A stretch of 64,000 nucleotides of DNA from assembly GCF_001194135.2 (NCBI RefSeq), contig NC_068994.1, forward strand, positions 22,447,928 through 22,511,927, in the 5' to 3' direction. Positions 3,255 to 29,422 of this stretch are shown piece after piece; the first letter of the stretch is position 1; every line of letters begins with the position of its first letter. Source of the stretch: Octopus bimaculoides. Lineage: Eukaryota. Below the pieces are notes generated by a model. It saw only the letters and a list, made by a program, of their open reading frames with translations. It searched no databases and was not told the DNA's origin. The position numbers and the translations under genes were made by a program.

Positions 3255-4499
3255 CTAGACTTTATTGCAAGATGAATGGTGTGCATTTGGTGGTTGAGGC
3301 AAAAACTGGGGTGTAGTGGTATTTCCACCAGCGTTTAATCTTTCTGTCATTGTGAACCCTCGGGACCAATTAAAATTGTTGTCCCAGTTGTTTGGTGTTA
3401 ACTGATGGTGGGGATATGTCGAAGCTATCCAAGTTGATGGAATATTAAGTGGTTGGGGTCTGATAGAAGGATTAGGACTTGATAGTTGGGGATGCTGTGA
3501 ATTCTGTGGAAGAGGTTCTGATATTGATTTAGATTCAGTCAATTTCCGCAGTTCTTCAATTGTGTGGGTACGTTCATGATTTTTTAAATTGGTAACTTGT
3601 GAGAATGCTTTTCCACAAACAAGACAAGAAAATGGTTTTTCTCCAGTATGGATACGTTCATGATTGCGAAGGTTAGTCTGTTGTGTAAACGCTTTTGAGC
3701 AGAAAGAACACTGGTATGGTTTCACACCAGTATGAGTTCGCTCATGACTACGTAAACTTGATTGCTGACTGAATACTTTTGTACAAAATGAACATTTGAA
3801 TGGTTTCTCCCCAGTGTGAATACGCTCATGACTTTTGAGATTAATAAGTAGAGAAAATGCTTTCGGACAAAAGACACATTTAAATAGTTCTCCAGTATGA
3901 GTACGTCGATGATTGTCTAGATTGGTACGTTGACTAAATGCTTTACCACAGTCAGCACATGTATAAGGCTTCTCTCCTGTATGAGTTCGCAAATGTATTT
4001 TAAGATTCCCCTGTTGACTAAATGTCTTGCTACATATAGAACAGGCATATGGTTTTTCTCCAGTATGAACACGTTCGTGGTTGCGCCATTCAGTCTGTTG
4101 AGAAAATGCACGATCACAAAATGAACAATTATACGGCTTTTCACCAGTATGTGTCCGCTCATGATTTCGCAAAATGATTTCTTGAGAGAAAGCTTTCTTG
4201 CAGTAAGAGCAATAGAAGTGCTTTGCTCCAGTACGTTCATGATTATTAAGGTTGATTTTACGAGAAAATCCTTTACGACAAACACCACATTTAAAAGGTT
4301 TTGCAAGAGCTAAAGTTCGTCTTATTGGACACTTAAGAATTTCGTTACTTTGGTAAACACTGTCTGGCTTACTTACAAAATCACTACACACAGTCTGAGT
4401 GTTATCAATCGAATTGATGGCTGGAACTGTATGCATAGCCTTTGATTTCATAAAATCTGGCAAATTAACAGAATTCTGATCAAGTTTATAATTCATCAT
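3255..4499 (-). CDS. C2H2 zinc-finger protein A (414 aa, single coding exon; 1 degenerate + 8 canonical fingers, Pro/Ser/Asn-rich tail)
   Basis: Uninterrupted ORF with eight C-x2-C-x12-H-x3-H units joined mostly by TGEKP linkers (array ~3564-4289). Start context cttaaaATGATG. Candidate acceptor tttttcag 9 nt upstream (AG at 4510-4509). No KRAB/SCAN/BTB/ZAD-like domain recognisable. Confidence 0.93.
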
Positions 4500-20679: not shown

Positions 20680-22122
20680 ATGTATTCTGGCCAACCAGTT
20701 TATCCAAGTTTTGGGAACCATTATAATTATCACAGTTGTGGAATCTCTTATCCTTCCAATGACCAGGCTCAAACATACAAGAATGTACCTCATAACTCAA
20801 AGAAACCATATAAATGTGATGTATGCCGAAAAGGTTTTACACTAAAAGCTTATTTAAATAAGCATGAATTAGCTTCAGCAACAGGAAAACACTTCAACTG
20901 TGCCTTCTGTGGGAAAGTATTCAGCCAAAGAGATAAATTGAAGAATCATGAACACACACATACTGGTGAAAGACCATATACCTGTGAAGTATGCTGTAAA
21001 GCATTCAGTCAGAGAACACATTTGAACAGTCATAAACGTATTCATACAGGAGAAAAACCATTTACATGTTTGATTTGTCGGAAATCCTTCTCACAGAAAT
21101 CGCATCTTAATAACCATGAACGTACCCATACAGGGGAAAAGCCTTTTATGTGTTCTGTTTGCTGTAAGGCATTTAGTCAAAGAACACATCTCAATAGTCA
21201 TGAACGTATTCATTCTGGTATTAAACCTTTTGTTTGCTTAATTTGCAACAAAGCATTTGCACAGAAGGATCATCTCAACAACCATGAAAGGATTCACACT
21301 GGAGAAAAGCCATTTAAATGTGATGTATGTAAGAAAGCATTCAGTCAGAGGACTCATTTGAATAATCATAAGCGTGTTCATACTGGAGAGAAACCATTTA
21401 AGTGCAGTGTATGTCAAAAAGCATTCAGTCAAAGAACACATTTAAATAAACATCAGCATACACACACTGGAGAAAAACCTTATAAATGTGAAGTGTGCAA
21501 GAAAGCATTTTCTCAACGATCACATCTTAAAAAACATGGACATTCACACATAGGGGTATCAAATGACACTGGTATGTCTCAAAGACGAAATCAAACACCA
21601 AACCAACTTCAGCTGGAACCTATCTCAGCAGGTACTGGCAGTAGTGAGCTTCAGCAGCCAGCAGCTGTTACTACTGCTCCTGCTATGGGATCAATGTGCA
21701 CACATCATCAAATGGTGGCTCCTAGACCAGATCATAATCATGCATGGGTGAGGGGATTCCCTGTGTCACCTACATCATGGACAACTACCAGCTGGGTAAC
21801 TTCAAGCAATGTTCCTTCATGTACAGCTGGACACAATATATCCCCATGTACAGGTGGACACAATATATCTCCATGTACAGGTGGACACAATATGTCCACA
21901 TGTACAGCTGGACACAATATATCCACATGTACAGCTGGACACAATATATCCACATGTACAGGTGGACATACAATGTCACCATGTTCTGGAGGACATGATA
22001 TATCCCCATGTATTAGTGGACACAACATGTCCCCATGTACAGGTGGACATGACATGTCCTCATGTACAGCTGGACACAACATATCCTCATGTACAAGTGG
22101 ACACAGCAAGCAATCAGATTAG
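20680..22122 (+). CDS. C2H2 zinc-finger protein B (480 aa, single coding exon; 1 degenerate + 8 canonical fingers, C-terminal 9-aa Cys/His repeat)
   Basis: Uninterrupted ORF with eight canonical fingers and TGE(K/R)P-type linkers (array 20815-21549). In-frame TGA at 20659 upstream and gtaaaATG context support this start. Confidence 0.94.
   Translation: MYSGQPVYPSFGNHYNYHSCGISYPSNDQAQTYKNVPHNSKKPYKCDVCRKGFTLKAYLNKHELASATGKHFNCAFCGKVFSQRDKLKNHEHTHTGERPYTCEVCCKAFSQRTHLNSHKRIHTGEKPFTCLICRKSFSQKSHLNNHERTHTGEKPFMCSVCCKAFSQRTHLNSHERIHSGIKPFVCLICNKAFAQKDHLNNHERIHTGEKPFKCDVCKKAFSQRTHLNNHKRVHTGEKPFKCSVCQKAFSQRTHLNKHQHTHTGEKPYKCEVCKKAFSQRSHLKKHGHSHIGVSNDTGMSQRRNQTPNQLQLEPISAGTGSSELQQPAAVTTAPAMGSMCTHHQMVAPRPDHNHAWVRGFPVSPTSWTTTSWVTSSNVPSCTAGHNISPCTGGHNISPCTGGHNMSTCTAGHNISTCTAGHNISTCTGGHTMSPCSGGHDISPCISGHNMSPCTGGHDMSSCTAGHNISSCTSGHSKQSD
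21820..22104 (+). repeat. Coding 27-bp tandem repeat, 10 full copies + 1 partial (C-T-[AG]-G-H-N-[IM]-S-[PT])
   Basis: Unit tgtacagctggacacaatatatcccca; Cys codons recur every 27 nt from 21820 to 22090. Confidence 0.95.
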
Positions 22123-22988: not shown

Positions 22989-23907
22989 TTAGGTTGTCAA
23001 GAAAGTTCTTGTGGTTTTTAACCTTTAAATTCAGATGCACATATCTTGGCTCAAACAAAACTTTATTAATCGAAATAAACACCATCAGAATCAACACATT
23101 TTTGCCAACGTGAAACAGGTTTATTTATGCCAATAGTGTAAAAATCCTGCATTCTGGTGGCGATGAAGTCGTTGAAGGCATGTTTGGCATCGTCTTGGCT
23201 TTTGAAGCATTTCTCACGCAGGAAGTTGTTGAGACACTTGAAAAAGTGGTAGTCGGTAGGCGAGAGGTCTGGTGAGTATGGAGGATGAGGTAGAGTTTCG
23301 TAGCTGCAGGGTCAGTTGTGCGACGTGCAGCTGAGCATTGTCGTGGAGAAGAATTGGTCCTTTTCTATTGACCAATGCTGGCTGTTGTTGTTGGAGTTTC
23401 TTATGCATTTCATCTATTTGCTGACAGTACTTCTCTGCCATAATAATTTTGCCTGGATCCAAAAAGCAGTGATGGATGAGACCAGTGGCAGACCACCAAA
23501 CAGTCACCATGACCTTGTTTTGGTGCAACTTTGGCTTCGGGAAGTGCTGTGAAGCTCCGTTGGTATCCAGCCACTGAGCTAAGCATCACCAGTTGTTATA
23601 AAGAATCCACTTTTCATTGCAAGTCACAATCTGGTCGAGAAACGGGTCGTTCTTGTTGCATAAAAGAAAGGAAGACGACACTTCAAGACAGTGTTTTTTT
23701 GGTTGTCGTTCAATTCGTGCGGCACCCATTTCTCAAGTATTTTTGTTTTTCCAATCTCTTTCAAGTGGTTGGAAATTGTCATGTATGTTACGTCTAATTC
23801 AGAAGCAAGCTCTCGAACAGTTGTGCGTGGATTGGCTTCCACTAAGGCTCTTAGTTGATCGTTGTCAACATCCGATAGCCAACCACTACGCTTATCATCT
23901 TCAAGAC
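22989..23907 (-). mobile_element. mariner (Mos1/Hsmar1-like DD34D) transposon, frameshifted, 5' end lost in a gap
   Basis: TA|ttaggttgtc terminus. Transposase pieces include WVPHEL, KVMVTVWW, LLHDNA and a YSPDL-type region. Confidence 0.92.
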
Positions 23908-28167: not shown

Positions 28168-29422
28168 TTAGGTTATTAAAAATGAAATGTCTGATTTCAA
28201 ATTGAAATTTTATTTTATTTTATCTCAAACAAGAAGCAGTGCAATTAATCAAAGTATGTGCCTAAACTATCAACACAGTTTTGCCATCTTAATGGTAACT
28301 TCTTTATGCTGGCAGTGAAGAAGCCTGGAGGTGAGAGGTGATGAAATGGTGAAAGGCTGTTTTCACAGCATCTTGAGAATTGAACGTTTTTCCTTGTAAG
28401 AAGTGGTCCAATTCCTGGAAGATGTGATAGTCAGTTGGTGCAAGATCTGGTGAATACGATGGGTGACAGAGAATTTCCAAATCCAACTCCTGTTTGAGTT
28501 GTGTTGTTTGTGTGACATGTCATCTTGTGTTGTCTTGCAAGAGGATTGGCCTGTCTCTATTGACCAATCTCGGTCATTTAATTGCAAGCTCCCTCATCAT
28601 TTCATTTAATTGGTTGATGTATACATCCACTGTAATTGATTGACCAGGTCTCATAAAGCTGTAGTGGATGATGCATGCACTGGACCACCAAATTGACACC
28701 ATTATCTTTTCTTGGTAAATATTCTGTTTTGGACTGTGTTTCAGTGCTTCATCTTTATCCAATCATCATGCCAAACACTTGCGATTGTTGAAAAGGATCC
28801 ATTTTTCGTCACCTGTAACAATACAATGCAAAAATGGTTTGCCTTTATATGCCATGACAGCAAAGAACAGCAAGTTTTGAGACAATTTTTCATCTGATGC
28901 TCATTTAATTCTATCCAGCTTCTTTACCTTATTGATTTGCTTTAGATGGTCCAATATTGTTGGAATAGTAATGTCAAATCTTGCTACTAATTTATGCACA
29001 GTTTGAGATGTATCCACTTTTACTATAGTTTTCAGTACATCTTTATCCACCTCGGTTGCAGTTCTCCCATGTGGCTTATTTTCAGGATTAAATCACCAGT
29101 ACAGAACTTCTCAAACCATCAACGCATTGTGTGTTCATTAGCCACATCCTCGCCAAACACCTCATTGATGTTTCAAGCTGTCTGCGATGCACTGGTTCCA
29201 CAATAGAACTCATATACAAAAATAACATGAATTTTTGACATGTCCATGGATTCACAAAAATTGATCTGAAACAGACAATCAAACAAAAAATTGCATTAGA
29301 AACTGTGATGATGTACCTGCACAATAAAACAAAACCAAGAACTGTTAAGGTGAAATGTCAGAGATAGCAAATCTCAAACTTAGTGGTTAAGGAAATCAGA
29401 CATTCCATACTTAATGACCTAA
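28168..29422 (-). mobile_element. Full-length (1255 bp) decayed mariner element with both TIRs and TA duplication
   Basis: TIRs ttaggttattaaaaatgaaatgtctgatttc and gaaatcagacattccatacttaatgacctaa, TA on both sides. Peptides KIMVSIWW and HPSYSPDLAPTDYHIF. Confidence 0.93.

Follow-up and report, generated by a model that had tools for sequence, protein, structure and literature searches.

KRAB, SCAN and ZAD, each with its own Pfam model, are N-terminal domains, folded or helical, which as non-finger modules define subfamilies of zinc-finger (ZNF) proteins. Groucho-type motifs occur in disordered regions of repressors; the WRPW/WRPY class, which binds Groucho/TLE, and eh1 are linear motifs centred on tryptophan or other aromatic residues in such parts of DNA-binding repressors. 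FiNZ, found in the ZNFs of cyprinid fish, is a short, lineage-restricted sequence carried on poly-C2H2 arrays; it is 28 residues long, N-terminal, rich in glutamate and encoded by its own exon in ~700 young, fast-evolving zebrafish genes (PMC10547256). The 2023 metazoan ZNF study that reports FiNZ in fish contains no cephalopod module (Wells et al. 2023, PMC10547256). The cephalopod C2H2 zinc-finger repertoire is among the largest in animals, with 1,453 C2H2 sequences in Octopus bimaculoides in one survey, and accessory motifs are not discussed in that 2025 work (PMC12513265). In the literature searched, we found no description of an accessory or effector motif of cephalopod ZNFs, and the literal strings of the motif reported below occur in no relevant paper.

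We describe a C-terminal block that is present in two ZNF genes of O. bimaculoides, called here ZNF A and ZNF B, and in their relatives from other cephalopods. The two genes lie in a 64-kb stretch of DNA, the whole of which was analysed and which we call the window. The block belongs among the lineage-specific accessory sequences associated with ZNFs, and its closest analogue is FiNZ. Like FiNZ, it is short and restricted to one lineage, it is carried on poly-C2H2 arrays, and it recurs across ZNF genes of its clade (ten instances in three genera). Neither of the two resembles a known domain, and the recruitment of a cofactor has been proposed, not proven, for both. In contrast with FiNZ, the block is C-terminal, lies in the same open reading frame (ORF) as the fingers and is rich in Trp, Tyr and Phe, its core having one acidic and one basic residue where FiNZ is glutamate rich, and there is no sequence similarity between them. 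Whereas FiNZ occurs in hundreds of young genes, the block is so far known from a handful of old paralogues common to octopus and cuttlefish. With KRAB, SCAN and ZAD it shares the property of a non-finger module that defines a ZNF subfamily, but it is C-terminal and predicted to be disordered. Our main reading, to which we assign a probability of roughly 0.6, is that this putatively disordered block defines an old coleoid poly-C2H2 subfamily and serves as a linear docking site.

According to the ORF list and to Pfam, ZNF A (3255..4499, minus strand) and ZNF B (20680..22122, plus strand) are both single ORFs that encode nine C2H2 fingers; the first has 414 aa and a tail of ~100 aa, the second 480 aa and a tail of ~190 aa. 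Both products correspond to exact gene calls on O. bimaculoides CM046614.1 (GCA_001194135.2), at ~22.45 Mb. Pfam recognized zf-C2H2 at E=5e-49 in ZNF A and E=3e-38 in ZNF B, with nine stretches each, and the matches in ZNF A were zf-C2H2 and zf-H2C2_2 only. Eight fingers per ORF are canonical by pattern (C-x2-C-x12-H-x3-H, with TGEKP-like linkers), and both proteins are members of the poly-C2H2 class. The original prediction had singled out a 19-residue motif common to the two tails, which held up on inspection. The motif lies at 3354..3410 (minus strand) in ZNF A and at 21703..21759 (plus strand) in ZNF B, where it reads HHQMVAPRPDHNHAWVRGF, in both cases in the C-terminal tail of an intact ORF, and the translations of the two sites are identical at 9 of 19 positions without a gap. 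Among ungapped pairings of 19 residues from the two tails, the highest BLOSUM62 score was 52, which was reached in 0 of 5000 trials with both tails shuffled; nine identities were obtained in 27 of 5000. The similarity of the two motifs thus exceeds chance. The 64-kb window contains no third copy, and the exact sequences of ZNF A and ZNF B are absent from the clustered protein collection.

A first search with full-length ZNF A was dominated by many-finger ZNFs, mostly of vertebrates. A pattern scan of the 120 matches listed singled out one protein from octopus, P0007, whose tail contains YLHEMPQSWESNYLWSRGYPMPP. We also searched 1.84 billion representative proteins exhaustively with HMMER, using a profile of three tails and a threshold of E<=0.001. 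Ten matches were obtained, eight of them from cephalopods, with E values from 1.9e-29 to 3.9e-5, and the sources were Octopus vulgaris, O. sinensis, O. bimaculoides, Argonauta hians, Acanthosepion (Sepia) pharaonis and SRA contigs. Since each 50% cluster is represented in the library by a single protein, the members counted are a minimum. The bacterial matches, P0124 and P0127, were rejected as spurious, being long repeat proteins whose scores are the sums of 10 to 12 weak stretches. Alongside the O. vulgaris and O. sinensis matches, an O. bimaculoides orthologue maps to 4.98 Mb of the chromosome that contains the window. A scan of metagenomes with the block returned no relative.

The relatives had come from a profile that included ZNF A and ZNF B, so that the evidence is in part circular, although P0007 had been found independently and the E values apply to a library of 1.84 billion proteins. 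For independent detection, a profile of seven relatives (alignment A3) without ZNF A and ZNF B was run against the six-frame translation of the window. It returned exactly two sites, a block of 59 aa in ZNF A (3303..3479, minus strand; 41.8 bits, E=6.6e-12) and a block of 62 aa in ZNF B (21640..21825, plus strand; 23.6 bits, E=3.2e-6), and the next best match had an E value of 1.2. The search for the motif in other cephalopod proteins, as the original prediction had proposed, yielded relatives in octopus, argonaut and cuttlefish. The block is present in at least ten poly-zinc-finger genes of Octopus, Argonauta and Sepia, and three block-bearing genes were seen in O. bimaculoides and five or more in Sepia. 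The genomic loci that we read contain four full members, three genes of Sepia and one of Argonauta, and one of the Sepia genes is new, with YLHTGWSNHYGWPRGFPVTPRW. In each of these four, an N-terminal motif (see below), 7 to 19 fingers and the C-terminal block follow one another within a continuous ORF; all eight genomic copies that we read are likewise uninterrupted single ORFs. These comparisons indicate that the block is homologous across the three genera. The octopod and decapodiform lineages split ~250-300 million years ago. So far, the block marks a small, old subfamily and not the large octopus-specific ZNF expansion.

Ten distinct instances were aligned and gave the consensus R-L-Q....S-W-M-x-S-x-x-L-H-[EQ]-M-x-x-S-W-E-N-N-Y-x-W-S-R-G-F-P-x-x-P...S-x-W-x-N-x-P-S..S-C-S...K. 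To judge from this alignment, the 19 residues form the core, and the most conserved part, of a block that extends over ~55-60 residues. The family core is W-[ED]-x-N-[YF]-x-W-x-R-[G]-[FY], placed after H-[EQ]-[ML]; its looser form is W-[EDS]-x-[NH]-[YF]-x-W-x-R-[GSPA]-[FY], in which W-x-R is invariant. The second Trp and the Arg were found in all ten instances and the first Trp in nine. As a family motif, the pattern first proposed, HHQ-x6-D-x-N-x2-W-x-RGF, proved too narrow: it fits 2 of the 10 instances, ZNF A and ZNF B themselves, HHQ being their form of L-H-[EQ]-M and D standing in place of the family E. The accompanying statement that the surrounding tails do not align had to be revised as well, since the flanks do align over the full blocks given above once relatives are used.

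ZNF A and ZNF B are collinear paralogues located 16 kb apart, with finger arrays that are 49% identical. In BLAST comparisons, the score of ZNF A was 338 bits with a Sepia member and 307 with ZNF B, and that of ZNF B was 315 and 311 bits with two other members and 307 with ZNF A; these values are too nearly tied to show whether the two are each other's closest relatives. Shared derived features, namely HHQ, a first finger with C-x-V-C-R-K-G-F, a broken first linker and nine collinear fingers, suggest that they are sisters. The first finger is non-canonical in both, at 4149-4300 (minus strand) in ZNF A, where the broken linker is G-A-K-H-F-Y-C, and at 20800-20960 (plus strand) in ZNF B, where it is T-G-K-H-F-N-C. 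H-x6-H and H-x8-H take the place of H-x3-H in these first fingers. ZNF A also has a linker, T-G-E-L-F-K-C, of a kind common to P0007, P0123 and L009 (GELF/GDLF/GELY). The Sepia gene at L008, 9980-12109, may be the counterpart of ZNF A and ZNF B. In the synteny comparison, the window had only mariner and other repeats in common with the Sepia and Argonauta loci.

The motif match might then be residual similarity that two paralogues have kept by common descent, without a function of its own. Their collinearity with nine fingers each, the HHQ, first-finger and linker features that they share, and the occurrence of the exact earlier pattern in these two proteins only would all fit such an explanation, which we nevertheless consider highly improbable. 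Cuttlefish, argonaut and further octopus paralogues retain the core, with flanks down to 0-35% identity, and the synonymous positions of the core are scrambled. When octopus P0007 and its cuttlefish orthologue P0121 were compared in 15-aa windows, identity was 0.87-1.00 in the last fingers and mostly 0.00-0.35 in the ~200-residue tail, with a peak of 0.93 at the block, so that across relatives the motif region is far better kept than its flanks. Mean column conservation was 0.62-0.65 in the 19-column core, compared with 0.37-0.44 in the rest of the alignment. Five codons (AGG, CGA, AGA, CGG, and CGT) are in use for the invariant Arg among the eight genomic copies, three each for Gly, Pro and Ser, and two each for Asn, Tyr, Phe and Glu. 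Because the residues are preserved in spite of scrambled synonymous sites, the block is under purifying selection at the protein level rather than being a DNA or RNA element. The leave-out profile, the octopus-cuttlefish comparison and the codon data, taken together, largely refute residual similarity, and the block is very probably a real, selected and unannotated feature of the family. The argument for function draws on the relatives in other genera and does not depend on the pair formed by ZNF A and ZNF B. A second island of conservation was observed in the tail of P0007 (~455-540) and P0121, with C-[ED]-L-F-x-K-x-P-P-L-P-Q-P-P-P and 67-73% identity between octopus and cuttlefish; this island of the P0007 group is absent from ZNF A and ZNF B.

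Both window genes carry the C-terminal block, and both copies are divergent and partly eroded, since typical members score ~100 bits or more versus 42 for ZNF A and 24 for ZNF B. ZNF A, whose core contains a tandem W-x3-F-x-W-x3-F, is devoid of the prolines after R-G-F, and ZNF B has neither the first Trp nor the Tyr of the family core. The block of ZNF B ends at the P-S-C position of the family. From this position almost to the stop codon, its distal part is replaced by an in-frame 27-bp tandem repeat (21818..22105, plus strand; 10.7 copies, 83% matches by Tandem Repeats Finder), which codes for approximately eleven units of 9 aa, CTGGHNISP and similar. This repeat is a coding minisatellite. 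Given the low scores, the lost residues and the repeat expansion in ZNF B, constraint on these two copies may be relaxed.

Most block-bearing genes also have an N-terminal M-Y-x-x-Q-P-x-Y-P. Alignment of eight N termini gave M-[YF]-x-x-Q-P-[MV]-[YF]-P-x-G-[NK]-Q-x-x-[FY], starting at Met1, and the carriers are ZNF B, P0007, P0123, the three Sepia ORFs, the Argonauta gene and L006. In ZNF B the motif is at 20680..20739 (plus strand), from Met1, and reads MYSGQPVYPSFGNHYNYHSC. With ZNF B left out of the profile, its N-terminal motif was the top match in the window, but with an E value of 0.096 only, and this 21-column profile (19 profile positions) is to be taken as suggestive; a 45-column version was confounded by matches to finger linkers. 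Some members have L-K-C-P-E-K downstream of the motif. ZNF A keeps L-K-C-P, the N-terminal motif itself is absent from it, and no upstream exon with the motif was found in the 64-kb window.

We compared the block with known domains and structures. No match to Pfam was obtained with nine tails at E<=10, and the N-terminal regions alone matched nothing except one lone C2H2 finger; a profile search of the PDB at E<=10 returned nothing. KRAB (PF01352) was found neither in ZNF A and ZNF B at E<=1 nor in seven full-length relatives at E<=0.01, and Pfam detected no SCAN, BTB or ZAD (zf-AD) domain in ZNF A, ZNF B or the full-length relatives. The full-length members matched families of the C2H2 type, and their few other weak Pfam matches are all inside the finger arrays. 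Two expectations of the original prediction were borne out by these searches: no known domain is present at the motif, be it in Pfam, the PDB or the literature, and the proteins form a cephalopod ZNF family devoid of KRAB, with members from octopus, argonaut and cuttlefish. As far as we can tell, the block is unannotated and undescribed.

AlphaFold2 models of the ZNF A tail and of a consensus-like Sepia tail showed no secondary structure, with pLDDT values of 55-59 and pTM values of 0.11-0.14, and the block is thus predicted to be intrinsically disordered. The alignments were shallow (nine sequences), which makes a small fold unlikely rather than excluded. The conserved stretch of ~55-60 aa is longer than a typical short linear motif, and its Y-x-W-x-x-G-x-P-x-P-P is reminiscent of a Trp-cage arrangement. 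It might therefore be a small folded domain, or it might fold on the last fingers or on DNA and so tune DNA binding. We regard this as quite unlikely, given the two AlphaFold2 runs, the lack of a relative in the PDB or Pfam, and the distance from the last finger to the block, which varies from ~55 to ~200 residues and argues against packing on the fingers.

The ten block instances were scanned for co-repressor patterns of the kind given in ELM. The WRPW-like pattern [WFY][KR]P[WFY], eh1, PxDLS (CtBP), PxVxL (HP1) and PPxY were each found in none of the ten, and the analogy with the WRPW/Groucho type drawn in the original prediction is not sustained by these counts. In principle, the block could still be a divergent Groucho/TLE-binding motif of the WRPW type. 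Its W-[SP]-R-[GP]-[FY] comes close to W-R-P-[WY] with one inserted residue, as in the W-S-R-P-F of P0126, and both are aromatic-centred sequences of disordered regions in proteins that bind DNA. However, W and R are separated by an additional residue, and the motif, which is located internally and not at the C terminus, is embedded in a much longer conserved context, of which neither the upstream W-E-N-N-Y nor the downstream P-x-x-P has a counterpart in WRPW proteins. We judge this explanation to be most improbable.

Other patterns were frequent. A single W-x3-[FY] is present in all ten instances and the tandem form W-x3-[FY]-x-W-x3-[FY] in nine, and R-x-x-P-x-x-P occurs in seven. W-x3-[FY] pentapeptides of the PEX5-PEX14 type, likewise an ELM pattern, are thus found as two tandem units in 9 of the 10 blocks. 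Peptides of that class are part of a receptor for peroxisomal import and are bound in the form of an amphipathic helix, whereas the block is on a ZNF of nuclear type and has no predicted helix, and the likeness is a resemblance of pattern only. R-x-x-P-x-x-P and W-x3-[FY] are general docking patterns, which we treat as leads only. Together with the disorder, the abundance of aromatic residues, the single invariant Arg and the absence of known co-repressor patterns, they would also fit a linear motif with another role, such as nuclear import or retention, regulated degradation, self-association or the provision of stickers for condensates. This explanation is on the unlikely side but deserves to be kept in mind; position-specific conservation over ~20 residues is more than would be expected of generic stickers, and neither a basic cluster nor an import signal of the PY type is visible.

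We favor docking by a linear motif. The fingers of these factors would bind DNA, and a spacer that differs in length between members would link them to the block. Contact with a conserved partner protein would be made by the invariant Trp-x-Arg and the aromatic residues beside it. This partner would most likely be a co-regulator of transcription, and the block would then act as the effector end of the ZNF. For an aromatic motif that is conserved within a tail modelled as disordered, docking is a plausible role. That the docked partner is a co-regulator seems possible, at odds that we put a little below even, and the block may mediate either repression or activation. A bolder proposal is that the block and the N-terminal motif form an effector module invented by cephalopods, which would recruit a co-regulator complex through a mode of docking undescribed in ZNFs and would mark the ancestral coleoid stock behind part of the ZNF expansion. 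We hold it to be rather doubtful; if it were true, the block would be the functional counterpart of KRAB, ZAD or FiNZ. A protein motif common to octopus and cuttlefish offers a handle, in the form of a peptide for pull-down, residues to mutate and a profile with which to sort the ZNF repertoire. The subfamily seen is small and its function is one that we infer, which limits the weight of the finding.

The analysis also corrects existing annotation. Several deposited Sepia pharaonis models of block-bearing genes are truncated or mis-spliced, because the genomic loci read as one continuous ORF. P0125 (L008, 10001-37994) is a spliced "gene" of 28 kb that skips all the fingers of a continuous ORF of 703 aa, and P0128 (L009, 10001-10750) corresponds to the last 249 aa of an ORF of 867 aa. 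P0122 and P0128 are both named "KRAB" but have no such domain: Pfam found no KRAB in P0122, and the precomputed record of P0128 lists C2H2 only. In L006, the SRA contig of P0126, the finger array (58-1506) and the block-bearing tail (1472/1508-1942) are in different frames, with an overlap of ~35 nt. This break in frame (1472-1506) may reflect a fault in the assembly, a genuine frameshift or a pseudogene. The DNA of L006 shares 62-73% identity with that of the other loci over most of the finger matches.

Elsewhere in the window, a long simple repeat at 48179-48864 is open in both directions, as (SSSL)n on one strand and as (TTMMK)n on the opposite strand; this is sequence of low complexity rather than a gene. 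An ORF of 224 aa at 42153-42827 (plus strand), with LYLRRDKRGRGLRS, had no match in Pfam; it may be the C-terminal part of ORF2 of a non-LTR retrotransposon, which its sequence resembles. Two fragments of mariner-type transposase are found at 23138-23764 and at 28334-28687, both on the minus strand and beside runs of N that represent assembly gaps. The ORF at 23214-23528 matches Pfam Transposase_1 (E=7e-18), and a similar mariner element is present in the Sepia locus L009, at 439-1041.
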